Shown: positions 47,763-59,560 of the stretch, piece after piece
Numbering within the stretch: the first letter of the stretch is position 1
Layout of the letters: every line of letters starts with the position of its first letter
Source of the DNA: Trichosphaerium sp. ATCC 40318
Lineage: Eukaryota > Protista > Tubulinea
Direction of reading: 5' to 3'
DNA length: 64,000 bases
Assembly: GCA_038496445.1 (NCBI GenBank)
Contig: JALMLS010000440.1
Span: 248,001-312,000 of the forward strand
The notes under the pieces: generated by a model
What the model saw: only the letters and a program-made list of their open reading frames with translations
Told to the model about the DNA's origin: nothing
Database searches by the model: none
Made by a program: the position numbers and the translations under genes

Positions 47763-49134
47763 TCAAATGTCTGATTGATCCCAAAAGGAGTTGGCACATA
47801 ATGGATCCAAAGTACATTCGAATCTATCATGACAAAATACAGCACATACATTATCAACACAGTTGGATGCAAAAATACAATCATTTTCTTGAACAAGACG
47901 AAAGCATCTTGCATGACTTTGACAACTTGTTTGAACAGGTACTGTTGGATCCACGTTGATTGACGATAATGTTGGTGGCTCACAGAATGCTGCTGTGCCT
48001 TGCCTGTAAAAAGGACGGTAAGTATTATCACTTGACCATTCATACGTACACAGAACTACCTTCATTTGAACGAATTGGAGGATCTTCTCTGGCGTCTGTC
48101 ACAATCGCTGCTCCGATATTATCAATTTGACCAGCACCAACCATACCTACAATGACACTACAAGATACTTCTTCGTTTTCATCAAGAGTTGCTGTAAAAC
48201 CAATAGCACCATCACGGGCAATAGATGATGCTACATTTATACAATGAAGCGAAGATGAATCAATAACAGCAATAGATGTATCAAAAGCGAGAGTGGCAAT
48301 GATATTCTCAGTTGTTGCTGGTAATGAGTTGTAGTTTTGACACAGGACTCGTATTTCGATTTTGTCACCCACACTCAATTCTTGAAGATCTATTTCACCA
48401 ACAGATGATATTGAATGCCTAGATTAATGTTAAATCGCATCGGTTTGATTAGATACATACCAACAAGATACAATCGGTTGAGAGCATATGTAATCGAACG
48501 AAGTATCTGTTCCATGTCGAATGGTGTGTATTTCTACTTGAACAAGATCTACTGATTCAAGTGTAGCAGCTTGATTACCATAAGGTATGCATACATCAAC
48601 TCCAGGAGGCATAAATATGTATTCCGATACTAGCTCAGAAAGGGTAACTATTTTGAAAATGAATTCACTAAAGATTGACTCTTTAAAGATAGCTCTTATA
48701 TCTATAACACCATCATTGCGAATAATATGAAAATTGTAACAACCTGTAGTTGAGGTTAGGTAAACTTCACTTTTAGATCAACGCACTGGCTCCGTTTTGA
48801 AGGAAGTTGATTGGATTTTGCAAAGTATCTACAAGTTGAGTACCACCAGCGTATCTTAGAGTACAAGATCCATTTACCCCAACGCCATTATTAATAGCAA
48901 AATTGGCTCCACTCGTGAAAACACAACTAAAAAAACTATCTATACCGACGCTATCATACTTTGCTGTTGTAACCCTCACACCTCCAACAATAGAGCTTAT
49001 AATTAAATTAGAGCTTCTTGAAGGGGTGTCAAGAGTTGCTTCTACTGTAGAAGGGAAGTCAAACGGTCCATTTGAATGGCGTGTATAGCTGTCACAATAA
49101 ATACGAAGAAACATAGAGTGAGTGTTTGATACAT
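47763..49134 (-). CDS. Secreted protein copy A1: variable N-domain + DUF11-like Ig domain + Cys-rich tail (apparent 1-nt frameshift near 49066)
   Basis: Signal peptide MYQTLTLCFFVFIVTAIHA; 4 exons; VGDKIEIRV.CQN...TLDENEEVSCSV...GQIDNIGA...DP...SNEGS (DUF11-like); tail CQSHARC...CIFASNCVDNVCAVFC...CANSFWDQSDI. Confidence 0.75.
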
Positions 49135-49753
49135 CACACGTGTGTTTTGATCTATTTTTGGTTTTTACTTTGCTTTCACAATTTAAGATATTGCATCGCG
49201 GTATTGGGGAAGTTCCTTATCAAATACTTGCGAAACATAGCTACAAAAGTCATGTTCCATTTGATAATAATGAAGAATGTAGCTACTTTTCTTGTGGTAT
49301 CATGTTCCATGTTATAGTAAACTGGTGGTTGAAAACAGCAGTTTGAAACGTTTGTAAGAAAAACGAGAGGAATCACTGTAACCATATTTTAAGTATCTTT
49401 ATAGTTAGTGTAAAAGGGAATGGCAAAGTGGGAAGGCGGTTTGGTGCTCACAATCTGTTGTGAGTTTCTCAGATTACAGCGGTGCGTATTACGTTCCTTT
49501 GCTGCTCTTAGTTTTCAACTGGAAAGCAGAAAAATAACTTTACATTTCGTTTATCTTGCCTTGAAGAAGTTCTCAACAACATTTTCCCTTACCCTTTCTA
49601 TGGAATTGTAACAGTTGTAGAGAACGAGTTTAGCGTTCTTATGTCAGGGAAGTACCGAAGACAGTAGGTGTAACACATTCCAATCTATGCTGTATCTTGA
49701 AATAAACTGTGAACCAAAAAAACTCAAAACCAAAAATAGACTAAACACACGTG
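49135..49753. promoter_or_regulatory. Shared divergent promoter of pair A1/B1
   Basis: 619-bp gap between divergent ATGs. CACGTG lies within 3 nt of each ATG and the ends are imperfect inverted repeats. Conserved in the second pair. Confidence 0.6.
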
Positions 49754-51140
49754 ATGTACCAAACAGTCGCTCTTTGTTTTTTCGTATTCACAGTAATTAC
49801 AGCAATCCACACCTTTCAAATAGACCCCTTTAATGTAACCTCTTCTACTGTGGCTAGCCCTAATAATCCAAGTACAGTCAATACCGTTTTTGATGTGTCT
49901 ATTGCTGGAGGAAAGCGTGATTTGATGGCAACATTGCTTCAGGGACAAGTTGAAGAGCTAAAACTTCACTGTGACATAGCCTTCAATACTATCATTGAGC
50001 TCTGATTTGACTGTACAAGGAAATTGTACAGTTGTCTATTCTGGAATTGATTTATTAAATCCTCGAATGCCAACGCCAATAAACTTTCTTCAAAATGGAG
50101 CTAGTACGTTGTCATTATATTTTTTCTTTGAATGAAGTATTTACTTTACATGCTAAGGCTGCTTCAACTTTCGTATTATTACAAACGATAATGGAGTAGG
50201 ATTGAGAGGCCAGTTTTGGGATTCACTTTCACCTCATGTCGTCACTCTTTCGCATCAGCTCACCATACCAATTAGTTCTGCTATAGATGTATGTATACCG
50301 TTTGGAAATGAAGCAAGCCTCCTCGCATCAGTAGATAGAGTAGAACTTGCCTTGGAAGGTTCAATACATTTTGATGGGGCAGTACAAAACATGTGCTCTC
50401 AACCGATTGTATCTTGTTGGTATGTACTCAAGAGAAATGATGAGCGATCTAACACCAAAATAGGCATACAATAGTGGCCATTGGCGAAGCAGATCTTCAA
50501 GAATTGAATGTTGGTGATCAAATCACAATACTAGTTGCCTGTAAAAACTACAACTCATTACCAGCAACAACTGAGAATATCATTGCCACTCTCGCTTTTG
50601 ATACATCTATTGCTGTTATCGATTCATCTCAGTACTGTGTTCATCGACTGCAATTTCTAGAATCGCAATTGGAGGTGTTCTTGCTTTTACAGCAACTCTT
50701 GATGAAAACGAAGAAGTATTTTGTACTGCAGTATTTGATTTGGTTGGTCCTGGTCAAGTTGATAATATCGGAGCAGCAATTGTTACAGACGCCAGAGAAG
50801 ATCCTCCAATTCGTTCAAATGAAGGTAGTTCTGTGTATGTAAAATACTATTTGAATGGTCAAGTGATAATACTTACCGTCCATTTTATAGGCAAGGCACA
50901 ACAGCATTCTGTGAGCCACCAACATTATCGTCAATCAACGTGGGAGGTCAAGATCCAACAGTACCTGTTCAAACAAGTTGTCAAAGTCATGCAAGATGCT
51001 TTCGTCTTGTTCAAGAAAATGATTGTATTTTTGCATCCAACTGTGTTGATAATGTATGTGCTGTATTTTGTCATGATAGATTTGAATGTATTTTGGATCC
51101 ATTATGTGCCAACTCCTTTTGGGATCAATCAGACATTTGA
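49754..51140 (+). CDS. Secreted protein copy B1 (two apparent frameshifts near 49990 and 50640; possible pseudogene or consensus error)
   Basis: Same exon structure as the other copies; SIAGGKRDL N-domain; DUF11-like exon; Cys-rich tail ending WDQSDI. Confidence 0.7.
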
Positions 51141-51353
51141 TTTAATAAATCACAAAGCTATTTCACATTGTAGTATGTACTTGTTGATAATATGCTTCAA
51201 TTTTGACAGTCATACCAGTAATAAACCATTAACTATTCATACTCTGTTAATGACTACTCAACAAAGGTAGTTTGAACATTTACAAACAAGTTGAACGATT
51301 TTCATAAAATGATGCACAATTACTTAAAGGATCTTTCACATTTTCTTCAAAAC

Positions 51354-51890
51354 AGATCCTTTTGTTGTCCCTTCTATTGTAACGACCTGACAAGTATCCC
51401 ATTACCTTTCTTGGAATCCCTATCACGTTTTTCTACATCCTTGGCATCACTTGATATCTCCAATCCTTTTGATCAACGACAAATGAATCTCAAGCTATTG
51501 GAAGAGCTTACAGGTACGAACTCAAACATCAAAACCATTAGTCTTTTTTTTTTTTGCCACCAACTTTTGACAATTTATGGTCGTGTGGGACGTTCTTGTG
51601 GCTCGTTTTGTTGTCAAGAATACGTTAGAACATGAGCATGTTTTAAACTACAAGAGGAAGAAAGCAAAAGGTAGAGACAAAGCGTGAATGAAACCAAAAA
51701 ACAACATTTAACTTTTTTCTTGTTATAGATGCTTCTAGCTCACCAAAGAAACAATCAAAGAAATCAAGAGCTGTTCTTGTAAGAACAAGAAGATTTGGTA
51801 CTTTAATGGCAAGTAGTGGTATATTACCATTCAGCATTCAAGGCTTTGTTGGCGGACAAGCAATAATTTTCTTATTGGAAAAAACTAAAT
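51354..51890 (+). pseudogene. Possible LRR (RNI-like) gene fragment
   Basis: STSLASLDISNPF-like LRR segment bounded by splice-like sites. No start codon or coherent continuation was found. Confidence 0.3.
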
Positions 51891-52114
51891 AAAAAACCAA
51901 GATGTAAAAGTTGATTTTTCTTTCGCTTCACGTATCTCGCCTTGCAACTATGATTATTGCCAATCAGATGCTCCCTGTTTCTGATTTCAGGATGACATAA
52001 TATTCTCTCTACAGGTAGTTATTTTTATTTCACCGACCCTACACCTTAGTAACATACAATGTCCTGCTAATTCTGTTTTTATTTTACCTAACTTTGCACA
52101 ATACCTCTTTTTTT

Positions 52115-54009
52115 TCATATCTCATTATCTTCACTCAGTGGGGGCAAGACGTCTTCGTCTTCAGCATTCATGTCAACAACATTCATGTATTTGCTCATGT
52201 CTGGTACACCAGTTCTTGCTTCACGTGATGATAGCACATTTCTTCTAGACGACTTTGTTATTGGTATTCCTGTCCTTACTTCAAATGGTCGTAGTGCATT
52301 ATTCCAACGCGGCATTTTCTTTGTTCGTGGTATTCCTGTCCTTGTTTCTCCGAATTTTGAGGGTTTGTTTTGGTTGTTAGTTTTTTTATGCTGTCTTTGT
52401 AACTCAGCAGCCTCAGCTAATAAGGCATCTTTGTCCTCGATCAATAGCTCATCATCTTCACTCAGTGGGGGCAAGACGTCTTCATCTTCAACATTCATAT
52501 TATCAACATTCATGTATTTGCTCATGATTACTGCCATTATTTCACTCCTTGTTAGTGGTAAACCAGTAAAATTCTTGACAAACTTTGTGTAGGGAATACC
52601 AGTCTCGATTTCAAATGCATTCAATCCAGATAACATATCCTCGATGGGGAACTCAGGCTTTGTTTCAGGAACACCACTCTCAAGTTCAGTGTTGTTCATC
52701 AATGTCAAGTTTGGTTCTTTTCTCCTGCTTCTATTTTTCTTTTGAGGTCGAGATTTCTTTTCTGGCATCATACCACGCATACCCTTTGTGTGAAGTTCGT
52801 TGGGTACTTGCCTATCGGTGCAAACCTAAACAGAATAAAGTCAGAAACGAGAACTCAAAACAACTTTGGCATAACAATTCTAAATTTGTATACCTCATGC
52901 CAAACAGTTATCCTTGGTTTGTTTCCATACTGTATTCTATGATTACCAGGTGGTATGGCTTTATTCGAAGCTTTTTCCGTAGCATAACCACACCACAATA
53001 CAGCGCACATGGGCGGTATGTCAATCCACTCATCATCTTGAGGGTCATGGAGTTGTAAGCCTTTCGTGTTTGACCCTAGGTTTAAAGCAAACAACCCTGG
53101 GTCGTAGTGTGCGATACAATTCATTGGAGGGACTGTGCGCTTCTACAAAAATGAGTAAGATAAAGAGAACGTGGTTTATTGTCATTATTGTAAACAAAGG
53201 TAGACGTACCTCGTTGTTGTAATAGTGAGCGAAATCAAGCATGCCATAGTTTGGTTTTTTTGAGTCGGTTTCGAGCATTGGTAGAGTTACACGCTGGCTT
53301 AACTCCTTTACTGAGCATCCAAATAATGTACTAGATGTTGCTTCCATAATTTGGTGAAGAACATCGTCCATCATTACTGAGAGAGGAGAAAGTGTAGCTT
53401 GTAGTTCCTGAGGGTAAAGAGACTTTTCAATGTAACTGAAAAAAAAAACAAGTCAGTTATTTGTGCGACACAACTGTACTTTTGAACATACCTTCCAGTA
53501 AGAATACGAAAGCTCTCTTTATGTGGAACAGCTAGAACATAGATTTAGTATCTCAAAAAGCCAGTGGATAGAAACAATTGAAAGGAACTTTTTTTGTGGA
53601 TATTTTCACGAAAATAAATTTACGGTTCAAAAAATCAGTGAAATGAACGGCCTGTCTTTGGTTTGTGGATACGTACGGTTATATCCCATTACCGTTGGGT
53701 AGTGGTATGTCTCTTTGTATTTTTTATCCTTGGAAAAGAAGCGTTCTGCAGCTTTCATGCTTTCCTTTGCCATTGTATTCATACGCTTGTTTAACTTAAA
53801 TACAGCCCATCCACGGCGTTTAAGGATCTTGTGGAGTCTATTTATTTCATTTTGATCCTTTTTTAGGACTTTATCTATTTCAATAGCTGGTTCATTTGAC
53901 TACAGGCCATGTTAGTTGTAAAACAACGAATTCAGAGTTTTAACGCTAAACGTAGACGCACCAAACTGCCTCCTTGACCTGAAAATGATGTTGATTGGCT
54001 CGTATTCAT
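52115..54009 (-). CDS. 2-oxoglutarate/Fe(II) oxygenase (IPNS-like fold) with repetitive C-terminal tail
   Basis: RRGWAVFKL...AERFF N-domain; facial triad AHYDPG...GNHRI; GLQL; KPRITVW 2OG-binding Arg; in-frame splice to the 221-aa tail ORF 52115-52780. Confidence 0.85.
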
Positions 54010-54209
54010 GTTATCTAAAACTCAGAATGAAAAAAATAACACTTTAGCTCAGAACAGTATTCACGTAAACGAGCCGGCAACTTTCGCACCAACGCACACG
54101 CCTTTTTTTTTTATTATACTTCTTAGGAGTGATAGACTTTGTGTTGTGGATGTGGTGTTAAAACAATATCACTAGAAGCATTTACAGAATTTATTCCACT
54201 CTACCATAA

Positions 54210-54421
54210 TAGATATGGCAGAAATACCGTATGTACCGATCTCGGGCTGAAACGAAAAAAACGGTTCATAAACGGTTCAAACGGTGCGCTGCCACAAAAA
54301 CCTTAGTGAAAAATTTTAGGTTCACTGAATGAAGAACACAGTCTTGTTCTGCACCGCGGTTCGGACTAAAACCGAAGTCAAATGAAAACGGACCGGTATT
54401 AGACCGGTATTTGCCACTTTA
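54210..54421. mobile_element. hAT-type MITE (212 bp)
   Basis: 8-bp direct repeat TACCATAA at 54202-54209 and 54422-54429. Imperfect terminal inverted repeats tagatatggcagaaataccg / cggtatttgccacttta. Several internal AAACGG and ACCG motifs. Confidence 0.75.
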
Positions 54422-54490
54422 TACCATAATGCTCTGTCAACAAGTACGAACTGCAGAATTCAGTGTAAAAATAACTTGTGATTTATTAAA

Positions 54491-55868
54491 TCAAACGTCT
54501 GATTGATCCCAAAAGGAGTTGGCACACAATGGATCCAAAGTACATTCAAATCTATCATGACAAAATACAGCACATACATTATCGACACAGTTGGATGCAA
54601 AAATACAATCATTTTCTTGAACAAGACGAAAGCATCTTGCATGACTTTGACAACTTGTTTGAACAGGTATTGTTGGATCTTGACCTCCCACATTGATTGA
54701 CGATAATATTGGTGGGTCACAGAATGCTGCTGTGCCTTGCCTATAAAATGAACATTAAGTATTGTCACTTGACCATTCAAATAGCATTTTACGTACACAG
54801 AACTACCTTCATTTGAACGAATTGGAGGATCTTCTCTGGCGTCTGTCACAATTGCTGCTCCGATATTATCAATTTGACCAGGACCAACCATACCTACAAT
54901 GACACTACAAGATACTTCTTCATTTTCATCAAGAGTTGCTGTAAAAGCAAGAACACCTCCAATTGCGATTCTTGACTTTGTGTTTACACACACCAGTGAG
55001 GATGAATCGATAACAGCAATAGATGTATCAAAAGCGAGAGTGGCAATGATATTCTCAGTAGTTGCTGGTAATGAGTTGTAGTTTCGACACGTGACTTGTA
55101 TTTCGATTTTGTCACCCACACTCAATTCTTGAAGATCTATTTCACCAATAGATGATATTGTATGCCTAGTTTGGTGTTAGATCGCTCATCATTTCTCTTG
55201 AGTACATACCAACAAGATACAATCGGTTGAGAGCACATGTTTTGTACAACCACATCACTAGCTATTGAACCTTCCAAGGCAAGTTCTACTCTATCTACAG
55301 ATCCAAGGTGGCTTGCTTCATTCCCAAACGGTATACATACATCTAGCGCAGGACCATTTCTGATTGGTATGGTGAGCTGATGCAAAAGAGTAACGACATG
55401 AGGTGAAAGTGAATCCCAAAACTGGCCTCTCAATCCTAGTCTATTATCGTTTTCAATAATACGAAAGTTGAAGCAGCCTAACCTCTTGTTAATACTTCAT
55501 CCAAAGAAAAAATATAATGACAACGTACTAGCTCCATTTTGAAGAAAGTTTATTGGCGTTGGCATTCGAGGATTTAATAAATCAATACCGGAATAGACAA
55601 CTGTACAATTTCCAAGAGCACCAGTATCAGAGCTCAATGATAGCCCACCGAACAACGTTCTACAGCGAACTTGTACTGCCCCTGACATTGTTGCTATCAA
55701 ATCACGCTTTCCTCCAGCAATAGACGCGTCAAAAATGGAAATGATTGTTTTTGGATTGTCAGTGTTAGCGATTGTATCAGAAGCTACATTAAAGGGATCT
55801 ACTTGAAAGGTGTGGATTGCTGTAATTACTGCGAATATGAAAAAACAAAGAGTGACTGTTTGATACAT
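54491..55868 (-). CDS. Secreted protein copy B2 (apparently intact)
   Basis: Signal peptide MYQTVTLCFFIFAVITAIHT; ORFs 55497-55871, 55137-55433, 54460-55125 and 54491-54691 join through three GT-AG introns. Confidence 0.8.
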
Positions 55869-56510
55869 CACGTGTGTTTAGTCTATTTTTGGTTTTGAGG
55901 TTTTTTTGGTTCACAGTTTATTTCAAGATACAGCAACATAGATTGGAATGTGTTACACCTACTGTCTTCGGTACTTCCTTGACATAAGAACGCTAAAACT
56001 CGTTCTCTACAACTGTTATAATTCCATAGAAGGGTAAGGGAAAATGTTGTTGAGAACTTCTTCAAGGCAAAGTGATATCCGAAATGTAAACGACCTTGTA
56101 AAGTTATTTTCCTGCTTTCCAGTTGAAAACTAAGAGCAGCAAAGGAACGTAATACGCACCGCTGTAATCTGAGAACTCACAACAGATTGTGAGCACCAAA
56201 CCGCCTTCCCACTTTGCTCATTCCCTTTACACTAACTATACAGATACTTAAAATATGGTTACAGTGATTCCTCGTTTTTCTTCTTACAAACGTTTCAAAC
56301 TGCTGTTTTCACCAGTTTAGTATAAGATGGAACGCGAAACAACAAGAAAAGTAGCTACATTCTTCAGTGTTATCAAAATGGAACATGACTTTAGTAGCTA
56401 TGTTTCGCAAGTATTTGATAAGGAACTTCCCCAATACCGCGATACAATATCTTGCTTAAATTGTGAACCCAAAAGTAAAAACCAAAAATAGATCAAAACA
56501 CACGTGGGTG
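55869..56510. promoter_or_regulatory. Shared divergent promoter of pair B2/A2
   Basis: Inverted copy of 49135-49753, with CACGTG next to both ATGs. Confidence 0.6.
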
Positions 56511-57899
56511 ATGTCTCAAACACTCACTCTATGTTTCTTTGTATTCATTGGTACTGCGATACATGCTTTTCAAATAGATCCTTTTGAAGTACCTTCTATT
56601 GTAACAGCAACTCCTGACGACACTCCAAAAACACTCATTGTATTTTCAAATGCTATTGTTGGAAACGTGCGTATTGTTACAGCGAAGTACAGTGGTTTCG
56701 ATCCATTGGGTGAGTTTTCTTGTGGGATTGGATTGAACTCCGGCAACTTTTTTATTGCTAATGGCATTGCGGATAATGGAACTTGTATTCTTAGATATGC
56801 TGGTGGCACTCAACCTGAAGATACCCTGACAAATCCAATCAACTTCCTTCAAAACGGCGCTAGTACGTTGTTAACCTAAAAGTGAAGTTTATGCTAAATC
56901 AATGATAGGTTGTTACAACTTTCATATTTCCCTCAATGACGGTATTTTCGAAGCGAGAGCTCATTTTCGAGATTCATTCACAGATGAAATAGTTACCCTT
57001 TCTGAGCTAGTATCTGTTTTCTTATTTATGCCTCCTGGAGTTGATGTATGTATTCCTTATGGTAATCAAGCTGGTAAACTTGAAGCTGTAGATCTTGTAG
57101 AAGTAGAAATACGTTCTGTTCAATATAGGACAGATGCTGCGTTCAGTTACATATGCTCTCAACCGATTGTATCTTGTTGGTATGTACTGAAAGAGAAATG
57201 ATGAGTGATCTAACACCAAACTAGGCATACAATATCATCTATTGGTGAAATAGATCTTCAAGAATTGAGTGTGGGTGACAAAATCGAAATACGAGTCACG
57301 TGTAAAAACTACAACTCATTACCAGCAACAACTGAGAATATCATTGCCACTCTCGCTTTTGATACATCTATTGCTGTCATTGATTCATCTTCGCTTCATT
57401 GTATAAATGTAGCATCATCTATTGCCCGTGATGGTGCTATTGGTTTTACAGCAACTCTTGATGAAAACGAAGAAGTATCTTGTAGTGTCATTGTAGGTAT
57501 GGTTGGTCCTGGTCAAATTGATAATATCGGAGCAGCAATTGTGACAGATGCCAGAGAAGATCCTCCAATTCGTTCAAATGAAGGTAGTTCTGTGTACGTA
57601 AAATGCTATTTGAATGGTCAAGTGACAATACTTAATGTTCATTTTATAGGCAAGGCACAGCAGCATTCTGTGAGCCACCAATATTATCGTCAATCAATGT
57701 GGGAGGTCAAGATCCAACAATACCTGTTCAAACAAGTTGTCAAAGTCATGCAAGATGCTTTCGTCTTGTTCAAGAAAATGATTGTATTTTTGCATCAAAC
57801 TGTGTTGATAATGTATGTGCTGTATTTTGTCATGATAGATTTGAATGTACTTTGGATCCATTGTGTGCCAACTCCTTTTGGGATCAATCAGATATCTAA
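56511..57899 (+). CDS. Secreted protein copy A2 (apparently intact)
   Basis: Signal peptide MSQTLTLCFFVFIGTAIHA; ORFs 56463-56879, 56902-57201, 57265-57972 and 57699-57899 join through three introns. Confidence 0.8.
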
Positions 57900-58373
57900 T
57901 TTAATAAACATTTATTATTACAAAACAATCTACTACTTTTATATTATGTTAATGAAGCCTCTCAACATGTAAGGTGGTTATTTAACACAACTGAACAGGT
58001 GAACTTTTATTGTTAATGATAGCAACTACTGGTAATGCCCTCATACGAATTAACGGTTTAAAATTATTATTATAAGTTGTATAACAGTGGTTTAGTACCT
58101 GAAAAATGGCAAGCCGGCCTTATAAAGAAATCTTGTAACCTATCACCCAACACTGAGTCTACTGCTCTCATTGTAATGAAAACAAAATGGATTATACAAA
58201 CTAGTTGAATGATACAGAAAACACGTGTTTCGGTATCTCACAAGTGACGAGGATCAGCAGTGAAAACGACAGTACTCAGCACATTTTAGGTATAGAGTGA
58301 ACCACAATTGAATCCGAACAACTTATCCGAAGTCAAATGTGGTAAACAAAAAAAAAACTACAAAGTATTTGCT

Positions 58374-59560
58374 ATGTTGTCGGTTGTTGCTATTTTTGTA
58401 GCTTTGTTTATCGTTTACATATTTTTTATACGTCGTACACGTAAAAGGATAAAAGGTCCTCCGGGTGAGCCTATACTTGGTAACATCAGGGAGTTTATAA
58501 GACAACCAACCGGTAATATACGCTACCAGCTACTGGAGAAGGTACTAGAAGCGTTAGATGTTGTTTTTGAATGACTTACGACAGTTAGTGGCGTAAACAG
58601 TATGGAGATGTCTATGAAATCTCCCTACTCGGCAGACAGCTTGTAGTGGTGTCTGACGCAGATGACATACGTTACATACTTAACGATCGACCTGGAGATT
58701 TTATTGCTCCGCCTATGTCTCCAAACGTGCTACGGGTACGTAATATGACTATTTTAGTACTTTACAAGCGTATAAGCTAACCTGTGGGTGCTAGGAACTT
58801 TCCACTAATGGGATGATGGCGACAGTTACAGGACCTCGTTGGAAGCGTTTAAGAAAAGCCGTTGCGCCATCATTTACAAAGGCAATACTCAGAAAGAACT
58901 TTAAACAGATATTTGACGTGTTTACTGAAATGATGGAAAAATGGCACGTGCTCGCCAAAACTGGAGAAGTTGTGTCTGATTTGTACAATCACACTTCTCA
59001 ATCTACTCTTGAAGTTATTTCCAGGACTACCCTCGGTATGCGTCCTTCTTTACTAGGTAAGAAAGATTTCGGAAAATACAGCGGTTGGCAAGCTGACATA
59101 TTGATTAGATGAAAAACAAAACCTCAGGTTCCGTGAAGCCTTGGCTATTCTGTTTTCCACAATATTTAAGAGAGGTAACTCGCCTTGGCCGTACTGGAAG
59201 ATTCCATACTGTAAACCCCAAGTACGCATATCAGGTGATCACATTCTGAAGCTAGTGTCACTAACAGACTACAAAAAGAAAGAAGCTTTTTTAGAAAACG
59301 AACTCAAAGAATTTGTAAATCCGTTCATTCAAAACGCTATTGATACCGCAAAAAAGAACGTACTGGAAGGCAAAGAACCATCTAACTTAGTAGAGGTAAA
59401 GCAGTGTTTTCTGTTTATTATTGTACTCCACTAATGACTTAAAAAGGCAATTGTTGATCACTCTGGCTGGACTGACGAAGAACTTTTTTCCAATTTAATC
59501 GGGTTGTATATCTCTATGCGCTGAATAGCTAAAAGAGGATTTCCGATACTCCGAATAGTG
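58374..59560 (+). pseudogene. Cytochrome P450, 5' half only (breaks off at the I-helix)
   Basis: N-terminal anchor and PPGEPILGN hinge; KQYGDVY; WKRLRKAVAPSF (C-helix WxxxR); TLEVISRTTL; ends TDEELFSNLIG. No AGxxTT, ExxR or FxxGxRxCxG motif follows in the window. Confidence 0.8.

Follow-up and report, generated by a model that had tools for sequence, protein, structure and literature searches.

Near-identical promoters beside divergent first exons: a probable mosaic of ages left by gene conversion in two head-to-head gene pairs of a marine amoeba

Why should a protein-coding exon differ far more between gene copies than the noncoding promoter beside it? The question is raised by a locus within a 64-kb stretch of DNA (the whole stretch that was analyzed, here called the window), in which four 4-exon genes form two head-to-head pairs, A1(-)/B1(+) and B2(-)/A2(+). 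Pair 1 (A1/B1; unit 1) and pair 2 (B2/A2; unit 2) are an inverted duplication of each other, and their elements are located as follows.

47763 to 49134, minus strand: gene A1; exons 49134-48787, 48743-48461, 48418-48050, and 48003-47763; frame broken
48461 to 49105, minus strand: putatively old segment of A1 that has escaped conversion; it starts near codon 10 and includes intron 1 and exon 2
49135 to 49753, no strand: bidirectional promoter and 5'UTRs of pair 1 (A1/B1), 619 bp
49754 to 51140, plus strand: gene B1; exons 49754-50103, 50158-50419, 50464-50834, and 50891-51140; two frameshifts
51141 to 54490, no strand: spacer between the inverted units, 3.3 kb, unique, with no similarity between the units
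54491 to 55868, minus strand: gene B2, intact, 408 codons; exons 55868-55529, 55477-55210, 55165-54797, and 54740-54491
55869 to 56510, no strand: bidirectional promoter and 5'UTRs of pair 2 (B2/A2), 642 bp
56511 to 57899, plus strand: gene A2, intact, 413 codons; exons 56511-56862, 56909-57179, 57225-57593, and 57650-57899
56540 to 57179, plus strand: putatively old block of A2, the counterpart of the A1 block, encoding the N-terminal jelly-roll domain

The exon model of A1, with GT..AG splice sites, was obtained by alignment transfer from A2, the introns of which are 46, 45, and 56 nt long. In B2, every exon is open, with phases 1, 2, and 2 and GT..AG sites. An Rfam search of the whole 64-kb window gave no match.

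When positions 49135 to 49753 were aligned with the reverse complement of positions 55869 to 56510, the two promoters differed by 26 substitutions in 613 aligned bases (p = 0.042, i.e., 4.2%; K = 0.044) and by 13 indel events, one of them of 12 bases, and shared identical runs of up to 64, 50, and 42 bases. A1 and A2 are nearly identical in the 5'UTR (97%) and exon 3 (98%) but not in exon 1 (71%), intron 1 (74%), exon 2 (81%), or intron 2 (69%; 48460-48419 in A1). B1 and B2 are 84% identical in exon 1 and 86% identical in intron 1, and the 5'UTRs neighboring exon 1 are 97 to 100% identical in the two comparisons. The contrast described in the initial annotation, i.e., near-identical promoters with long identical runs beside a divergent exon 1 (26/613 versus 29% in the A pair and 16% in the B pair), was thus confirmed. 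The variable patches that had been quoted were all found as written, and the PINFLQNGA motif and the cysteine positions are fixed in all four copies.

That annotation attributed the contrast to strong diversifying selection or to targeted diversification of ligand-binding loops. However, the silent sites have diverged as well. Based on the NG86, LWL85, and ML estimators of dN and dS, the dS of exon 1 is 0.49 to 0.60 in the A pair and 0.22 to 0.24 in the B pair (overall ranges, 0.45 to 0.60 and 0.20 to 0.24), and the silent divergence of exon 1 is 5 to 10 times that of the promoter (3 to 10 times when silent sites and intron 1 are taken together). Fourfold sites of exons 1 and 2 differ at 12 of 59 positions (20%) in the A pair, or at 10 of 31 (32%) in exon 1 only, and at 10 of 72 positions (14%) in the B pair, compared with 26/613 in the promoter (P = 3e-5 for A and 0.0024 for B). 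The corresponding comparison of synonymous differences in exons 1 and 2 with the promoter differences gave P values of 3e-19 (A) and 5e-6 (B). Even in the conserved frames of A exon 1, where dN/dS is 0.15, dS is ~0.6. In the 3' exons 3 and 4 of the A pair, by contrast, only 3 of 87 fourfold sites differ, and silent changes in codons for identical amino acids are found in 9 of 192 codons there versus 25 of 126 in exons 1 and 2 (P = 2.8e-5). The silent divergence is thus significantly unequal between segments. Since silent sites have diverged too, the proposed diversification fails to explain the contrast between exon and promoter. What the data largely show is the refuting case that had been set out beforehand, with an equally high dS and a recently converted promoter: given the divergence of silent sites and intron 1, it is the promoter and the 3' half that look recently homogenized by gene conversion.

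The relationships among the four genes change along their length. Introns 2 and 3 together with exons 3 and 4 are 87 to 100% identical between the A and B types, whereas exons 1 and 2 are only 56 to 60% identical. Informative sites that group the genes by type number 62 in exon 1, 9 in intron 1, and 62 in exon 2; in exons 1 and 2, 124 sites group by type (A|B) versus 6 by unit. In intron 3 and exon 4, 8 sites group the genes by physical partner, i.e., by unit, versus none by type, so that the 3' end pairs each gene with its head-to-head partner. The copies are therefore mosaics, displaying near-identical noncoding segments, incongruent segment trees, and unequal silent divergence, by which conversion is recognized. 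Because introns 2 and 3 are homogenized across gene types, conversion operates at the locus.

The most probable history begins with one head-to-head gene pair that underwent inverted duplication, after which the four copies have evolved partly in concert by gene conversion. Recent tracts would have homogenized the ~620-bp promoter and the first ~30 coding bases, as well as the 3' half of the genes, which begins at the end of exon 2, runs to the stop codon, and is alike even between A-type and B-type genes. The N-domain-coding block would have escaped conversion, and it retains a much older divergence, not only at replacement sites but equally at silent and intronic ones. Since this block keeps its old divergence, the contrast between exon and promoter is probably in the main a mosaic of ages, with a promoter of unusually young age beside an exon that has not evolved unusually fast. 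In this block, purifying selection acts on the signal peptide and the structural frames, and the jelly-roll core changes at a rate close to neutral or a little above it, in keeping with a putative binding domain under relaxed or moderately diversifying selection. What bars conversion from the block is presumably either selection or sequence divergence. The copies could be old duplicates, or older sequence could have been imported into the block after a young duplication. Two copies per type do not separate time from local mutation rate: the silent-site pattern would be the same if mutation were raised throughout the region from exon 1 to intron 2.

The similarity of the promoters could instead mean that the duplication is old throughout and that the whole 620-bp bidirectional region has been held by strong purifying selection and not by conversion. 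The longest identical runs and a common core motif, which adjoins both start codons in the promoters, would fit this explanation. However, the promoters (K = 0.044) have diverged as much as the silent sites of exon 3, a converted segment, in A1 and A2 (dS, 0.035 to 0.044), the 13 indel events fall within the 613 aligned bases, and introns 2 and 3 are homogenized too, even between gene types. The promoter similarity thus probably reflects young age and not strong constraint, and we regard purifying selection as a very improbable explanation.

How much of the protein-level difference is due to selection? In the core of the mature N-domain (~65 codons, the bounds of which were chosen after the data had been seen and the patch alignments of which contain indels), dN/dS is 1.19 to 1.65 in the A pair and 1.03 to 1.19 in the B pair, or about 1.0 to 1.65 overall by the three methods. 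The excess of dN over dS is not significant (Fisher P = 0.30 for A and 0.35 for B), suggesting relaxed or mildly diversifying selection, and for exon 1 as a whole dN/dS is 0.57 to 0.87. The window-wise comparison of dN/dS with promoter divergence that had been recommended gave values of up to about 2 to 2.7 in single 24-codon windows, yet dS was also far above the promoter divergence. In the B pair, the core pN (0.29) exceeds the 14% change at fourfold sites, and the variable positions of the A and B pairs coincide more often than expected (29 observed versus 18 expected; P = 2e-4). The same regions of the N-domain are thus under relaxed constraint or moderate diversifying selection in both pairs. 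The description of the patches as CDR-like was borne out in part: amino acid differences of the A pair affect 49% of predicted-loop positions versus 32% of strand positions (P = 0.04), but about one-third of the strand residues differ as well, and in the B pair the enrichment (31% versus 22%) is not significant.

These values leave some room for strong positive selection on ligand-binding loops as the main reason why exon 1 differs more than the promoter. The core dN/dS, the highest windows, the coinciding positions with some enrichment in loops, and the predicted CBM-like binding fold of the N-domain all point in that direction, and a core dN/dS of 1.0 to 1.65, a high value for a folded domain, suggests a possible contribution of positive selection to the difference between the proteins. 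As the main cause, it is unlikely. Selection on amino acids cannot yield silent and intron 1 divergence several times that of the promoter, and changes are spread evenly over the first, second, and third codon positions (51:47:53 in the A pair and 29:25:29 in the B pair). Together with the lack of significance and the lower values for whole exon 1, this means that strong diversifying selection on exon 1 is not demonstrated.

Targeted or programmed diversification, the other proposal, would act either by local hypermutation or by using the broken unit 1 as silent donor cassettes for an expressed unit 2. Both genes of unit 1 are indeed frameshifted in the assembly and both genes of unit 2 are intact, gene conversion is clearly active at the locus, and silent and intron sites are raised in the 5' block. 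However, the mutation spectrum carries no hypermutation signature in the form of a base or strand bias: all base pairs change, and the ratio of transitions to transversions is 72:79 in the A pair and 41:42 in the B pair. With an unbiased spectrum, equal codon positions, and similar numbers of transitions and transversions, nothing points to targeting. The patches are also precisely the parts that are not exchanged between the copies. A whole-genome DNA search of the 70-Mb assembly with the promoter and the exon 1-2 block returned only the two units themselves, with no third copy or cassette, and an outside donor for the patches is thus unsupported.

Transcripts from an independent data set bear on the same question. 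Two of them, L031 and L032 (proteins P0001 and P0013), represented the spliced product in searches and fold predictions, and the genomic exons were searched individually. L031 is identical to exons 1 and 2 of A2 over 405 of 405 bases, across the splice junction, and L032 corresponds to exon 1 of B1 with two substitutions and the 2-base indel. The patches are therefore stable, the transcripts matching the genomic sequence almost base for base (identical or 99% identical in the patches), and exon 1 of B1 is transcribed. The 3' parts of L031 and L032 are identical to each other and form a patchwork of the genomic copies, which is probably due to assembly collapse. Elsewhere in the family, the young duplicates L013/L016 and L022/L015/L021 are uniformly 96 to 99% identical, exon 1 included; recent duplicates thus do not display the excess divergence of exon 1. 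These results speak against targeted diversification of the patches, and we consider it extremely improbable.

The frameshifts of unit 1 raise the further possibility that A1 and B1 are dead and that the excess in exon 1 is free drift. The two B1 frameshifts that had been assigned to variable patches are real in the assembly: 2 bases are missing at the margin of the exon 1 patch (49987/49988), and 2 extra bases are present near 50630, within the exon 3 patch. A1 has a 1-base deletion at 49067/49066, directly after the signal peptide, which was missed in the initial reading. B1 carries 36 substitutions in exon 3 that are unique to this copy, and the unit 1 genes have somewhat more unique changes in exons 1 and 2 (31 + 20 in A1 versus 22 + 12 in A2; 13 + 3 in B1 versus 10 + 2 in B2). 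Drift, however, cannot outrun the neutral rate of the adjacent promoter unless the promoter has been converted. In the same comparisons, the exon 1 frames have a dN/dS of 0.15 to 0.29, indicating constraint on both copies during most of the time over which they diverged. Exons 2 to 4 of A1 are open, and L032 lacks the 2-base deletion and carries B1 exon 1 in an open frame. Pseudogene decay is therefore quite improbable as the source of the excess, and an age mosaic created by conversion is preferred.

In the encoded proteins, a signal peptide is followed by a CBM-like jelly-roll N-domain (exons 1 and 2); exon 3 encodes a DUF11/CnaB-like Ig domain, and exon 4 encodes a Cys-rich tail. AF2 models of the whole protein and of the isolated N-domain had mean pLDDT values of 82 and 86, respectively. 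The predicted N-domain fold resembles beta-jelly-roll CBMs (CBM11, 17, 28, 29, 6, and 4) and phage receptor-binding domains, with CBMs making up most of the match list (VIA Z, 8 to 10.2, in the middling range of the tool; 121 to 150 aligned residues). Unlike in CBMs proper, the resemblance is at the level of the predicted fold only, as no Pfam or PDB sequence match places the N-domain in a CBM sequence family. The predicted fold of the middle domain matched CnaB pilin, MG, and DUF11-type Ig folds (Z, 10 to 11.7), and phmmer matched the exon 3 domain to bacterial DUF11/DUF7933 "conserved repeat" proteins (E = 8e-9 and 9e-5). The nearest known counterparts of the exon 3 domain are thus these bacterial repeats and the Ig domains of CnaB-type pilins or adhesins. 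Unlike DUF11 repeats, the exon 3 domain is single, not in an array, and lies in a eukaryotic intron-containing gene. Pfam searches of all exon ORFs and P0013 gave no family; for the exon 3 ORF and P0013, this holds for E values of up to 1, DUF11 (PF01345) included. PDB sequence-profile searches with both domains were blank. The neighbors of the exon 3 domain in a protein atlas were DUF11 clusters (score, 0.81), which is a lead only.

A homologous-protein search returned only two transcript-derived proteins, both from the same organism; the same search with B2 exon 1 alone gave no match, and a search of metagenome contigs with P0013 found no relative. In the genome, the exon 3 domain has at least 45 matches. 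The head-to-head pair L007/L004 has a diverged 5' half (63 to 79%) and a homogenized 3' half (93 to 100%), and at least two head-to-head pairs, the present locus and the C45 pair, carry diverged heads on homogenized bodies. The locus thus documents a large, lineage-specific, lectin- or adhesin-like family of secreted proteins in a marine amoeba, with a CBM-like head on a DUF11/CnaB-like stalk and without a Pfam match. On the basis of the predicted folds, the proteins are probably sugar binding, and glycan binding may reside in the N-domain. With this architecture, and with diverged heads on homogenized bodies in at least two pairs, the family is a sensible candidate for the recognition of prey or surface glycans.

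The genetic mechanism at the locus is of an ordinary, known kind. In the silkmoth chorion family, segments of gene pairs are kept alike by gene conversion. As at the present locus, the genes of each pair have one short bidirectional promoter in common, the pairs exist in duplicate, and some segments stay alike and others diverge; the differences are that the protein family and organism are not the same, that only two pairs occur here, and that the homogenized parts are the promoter and the 3' domains. The chorion A/B pairs are transcribed divergently from a short common bidirectional promoter (PMC4639761). In Dictyostelium, tgrB1/tgrC1 genes form head-to-head pairs with a common promoter, gene conversion, and pseudogene pairs, and they encode IPT/TIG-repeat transmembrane proteins with proven kin recognition and extreme population polymorphism (PMC13648343). 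Both families are amoebozoan and extracellular, with head-to-head pairs (many of them in the tgr family), common promoters, broken duplicate pairs, and mosaicism attributed to interlocus conversion. Unlike Tgr proteins, those studied here combine a CBM-like jelly-roll with a DUF11-like Ig domain and have no transmembrane segment, and no sequence relationship to the tgr family was found.

It is conceivable, if distinctly doubtful, that the family is a recognition system in which coexpressed A and B partners have glycan- or ligand-binding jelly-roll heads kept different by selection that removes conversion tracts, and a common stalk, tail, and promoter maintained by conversion. If true, a marine amoeba would have a germline "variable head, constant body" design, serving prey or kin recognition by a logic comparable to that of tgrB1/tgrC1 or lectin repertoires. 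More generally, neither selection nor programmed diversification need underlie a coding exon that looks "hypervariable" beside a near-identical promoter; under active gene conversion, the similar parts are the unusual ones, as revealed by silent sites and introns.

The spacer between the two units contains a minus-strand gene that is 2OG-Fe(II) oxygenase-like (Pfam PF03171, E = 6.5e-7, for 52855-53124 on that strand), along with an acidic repeat ORF (direct repeat D6).

The window DNA is AT rich (~36% G+C) and eukaryotic, and it corresponds to positions 248001 to 312000 of contig C48 in a 70-Mb assembly. Between 47.7 and 57.9 kb it contains four related genes of two types, A and B, arranged as two head-to-head pairs, A1(-)/B1(+) (unit 1) and B2(-)/A2(+) (unit 2). 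The pairs are inverted copies flanking a unique 3.3-kb spacer. The A2 gene model was read from the sequence, and those of B2, A1, and B1 were carried over from A2 by alignment. All four genes consist of four exons (phases 1, 2, and 2) separated by introns of 42 to 56 nt, with GT..AG at every splice site:

56511-56862, 56909-57179, 57225-57593, and 57650-57899, + strand, A2 exons
55868-55529, 55477-55210, 55165-54797, and 54740-54491, - strand, B2 exons
49134-48787, 48743-48461, 48418-48050, and 48003-47763, - strand, A1 exons
49754-50103, 50158-50419, 50464-50834, and 50891-51140, + strand, B1 exons

The three splice junctions were all confirmed by JGI-sample transcripts L031 (protein P0001) and L032 (protein P0013), which also showed transcription of A2 exons 1 and 2 and of B1 exon 1. 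These transcripts have an identical 3' part of 635 bases (L031, 402 to 1036; L032, 641 to 1275) and different 5' halves (A2 type versus B1/B2 type); the common part is a mosaic of the four genomic copies, probably produced by transcriptome-assembly collapse of near-identical paralogues. Both genes of each pair are preceded by the same motif, mirror oriented, AAAACCAAAAATAGA..AAACACACGTG and then the ATG, which is probably a core promoter or 5'UTR element common to the family:

49135-49170 and 49720-49753, mirror motif of unit 1
55869-55900 and 56480-56510, mirror motif of unit 2

The initial annotation described exon 1 as far more diverged than the promoter, i.e., the bidirectional stretch and 5'UTRs between the partners of a pair. 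This description is correct, and the excess is far beyond chance. Across 613 aligned positions, the promoters (619 versus 642 bp) show 26 differences (p = 0.042; K = 0.044); 13 indel events also separate them, and the longest stretch of identity spans 64 bases. The quoted peptide patches, which are variable stretches between the conserved frames of exon 1, were all found, and PINFLQNGA and the cysteines are indeed fixed.

Identity between the two copies of each gene type, by segment (A1-A2; B1-B2)
5'UTR: 97%; 100%
Exon 1: 71%; 84%
Intron 1: 74%; 86%
Exon 2: 81%; 92%
Intron 2: 69%; 98%
Exon 3: 98%; 86%
Intron 3: 87%; 89%
Exon 4: 96%; 96%

The contrast had been attributed to strong diversifying selection or targeted diversification of ligand-binding loops. 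When dN/dS was considered together with promoter divergence, the protein divergence of exon 1 proved to be real, but silent sites, decisively, were diverged as well. For exon 1, dN and dS (NG86) are 0.33 and 0.49 in the A pair and 0.19 and 0.22 in the B pair, and dN/dS (NG86, LWL85, and ML) is 0.57 to 0.76 and 0.79 to 0.87, respectively. In the exon 1 frames (signal peptide and C-terminal frame), dS is 0.55 to 0.62 and dN/dS 0.15 to 0.17 for the A pair, and dS is 0.12 and dN/dS 0.27 to 0.29 for the B pair; since the A frames align unambiguously, misalignment does not account for their high dS. Fourfold-degenerate sites in exons 1 and 2 are changed at 12 of 59 positions in A (10 of 31 in exon 1) and at 10 of 72 in B, and those in exons 3 and 4 at 3 of 87 and 9 of 79, respectively; the excess in exons 1 and 2 over the promoter is significant for both A (P = 3e-5) and B (P = 0.0024). 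Fourfold third positions have changed at an equal rate in codons with the amino acid kept and in those with it altered. The differences are spread evenly over codon positions 1, 2, and 3 (51:47:53 in A and 29:25:29 in B), and transitions and transversions (72:79 in A and 41:42 in B) involve every base pair. Because silent and intronic divergence is beyond the reach of selection on amino acids, the exon 1 and promoter segments must differ in age or in mutation input, as judged from two copies per type.

Starting ~30 bases before the end of exon 2 and continuing to the stop codon, the four genes are near identical, introns 2 and 3 included, and the A and B types are only 56% to 60% identical in exons 1 and 2. 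Most informative sites in exon 1 (62 versus 4), intron 1 (9 versus 0), and exon 2 (62 versus 2) link genes of one type rather than genes of one unit; in intron 3 and exon 4, eight sites join a gene with its head-to-head partner and none join genes by type. The promoter K is the same as the silent-site divergence between A1 and A2 in exon 3 (0.035 to 0.044), and strong constraint on the promoter is disfavored because of its many indels. In the A genes, the young tract stops ~30 bases inside the coding sequence and restarts at the start of exon 3, with an old block of ~680 bp in between. Together, these patterns are evidence of gene conversion between the copies. In mechanism, the locus is an ordinary case of partial concerted evolution in gene pairs that are duplicated and transcribed divergently, a phenomenon of a known kind. 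Silkmoth chorion gene pairs, also duplicated and divergently transcribed, reportedly evolve in a comparable manner. Another comparable case of partial concerted evolution in divergently transcribed pairs is that of the Dictyostelium tgr genes (PMC13648343).

Ongoing diversification is not visible in the patches, as independent transcripts match them nearly base for base: 405 of 405 bases are the same for the A2 patches, and B1 exon 1 has two substitutions in 374 bases plus an indel. No further copy of the block comprising the promoter and exons 1 and 2 was found in the 70-Mb assembly beyond the two units, and thus no cassette that could have donated the patches from outside was identified there. 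A search of the same assembly with the exon 3 domain gave at least 45 matches. Among them, the young duplicates L013/L016 (contig C71) and L022/L015/L021 (C98/C433) form two sets that are uniformly 96% to 99% identical over the promoter, exon 1, and the rest; thus, no family-wide process accelerates exon 1. The C45 head-to-head pair L007/L004 resembles A versus B, being 63% to 79% identical in the 5' half and 93% to 100% in the 3' half. Family members are often clustered (L004, L006, and L007 on C45; L008/L014 on C2; and those on C71 and C98/C433), and at least two pairs are head to head.

Selection was also assessed in the core of the mature N-domain (the N-domain being the product of exons 1 and 2), defined as alignment columns 24 to 92, the boundaries of which were chosen after data inspection. 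Here, dN/dS is 1.29 to 1.65 in A and 1.03 to 1.19 in B, with neither ratio exceeding 1 significantly (P = 0.30 and 0.35). The positions variable in the A and B pairs coincide more often than expected (29 observed versus 18 expected; P = 2e-4). Some 24-codon windows have a ratio of at least 2, resting on very few sites. Differences in the A pair are modestly enriched in predicted loops over strands (49% versus 32% of positions; P = 0.04), and many strand residues also differ; enrichment in predicted loops was not significant for the B pair. Since the frames are clearly constrained in the same comparisons, the near-neutral rate of the core is a property of the domain and not merely pseudogene drift. 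These data suggest relaxed constraint, and possibly some diversifying selection, on a putative binding domain.

In this assembly, the unit 2 genes are intact, with 413 codons in A2 and 408 in B2, and both unit 1 genes are disrupted by frameshifts. The one in A1, which was absent from the initial annotation, is a 1-base deletion at 49067/49066 directly after the signal peptide. Of the two in B1, one is the loss of two bases at 49987/49988 (exon 1) and the other a surplus of two bases near 50630 (exon 3). In L032, which derives from an independent data set, B1 exon 1 contains both bases, has an open frame, and differs by two substitutions; the exon 1 lesion is therefore strain specific, allelic, or an assembly error.

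The predicted fold of P0013 has a mean pLDDT of 82 (~90 across residues 21 to 350), and that of the N-domain alone has a pLDDT of 86. The N-domain is predicted to be a beta-jelly-roll, with carbohydrate-binding modules and phage receptor-binding domains as the nearest structures (Z, 8 to 10.2), and the exon 3 domain is modeled as an Ig-like sandwich similar to the CnaB domains of pilins and to macroglobulin MG domains (Z, 10 to 11.7). The latter also gave weak phmmer matches to bacterial DUF11/DUF7933 repeat proteins, and its protein-atlas neighbors are DUF11, which is a lead only. Neither domain had a sequence match in Pfam or among solved structures in searches run exon by exon, with database transcripts standing in for the spliced protein. 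Distant relatives have a Pro/Thr-rich mucin-like stalk, one of them with a membrane anchor; in the window genes, the C terminus is instead a short Cys-rich tail, modeled with low confidence. The protein family is new and lineage specific, and its predicted fold and architecture point to a secreted lectin- or adhesin-like role. The family-wide N-domain motif GGRRDL is GGKRDL in the B genes and GGVRVT or GNVRIV in the A genes, and the first Cys of the NGC-C family motif is missing from all four window genes.

About 56660-56690, replaced GGRRDL site in A2 exon 1
About 48975-48945, replaced GGRRDL site in A1 exon 1

The 3.5-kb inverted repeats around the spacer (51141-54490) could in principle allow its inversion. 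Two features lie within the spacer and one just downstream of A2:

52855-53124, - strand, 2OG-Fe(II) oxygenase-like gene (Pfam E = 6.5e-7)
52115-52780, acidic ORF containing an 83-base direct repeat (spacing, 327 bases)
58308-59434 and beyond, cytochrome P450 exons downstream of A2 (Pfam PF00067; E = 4e-8)
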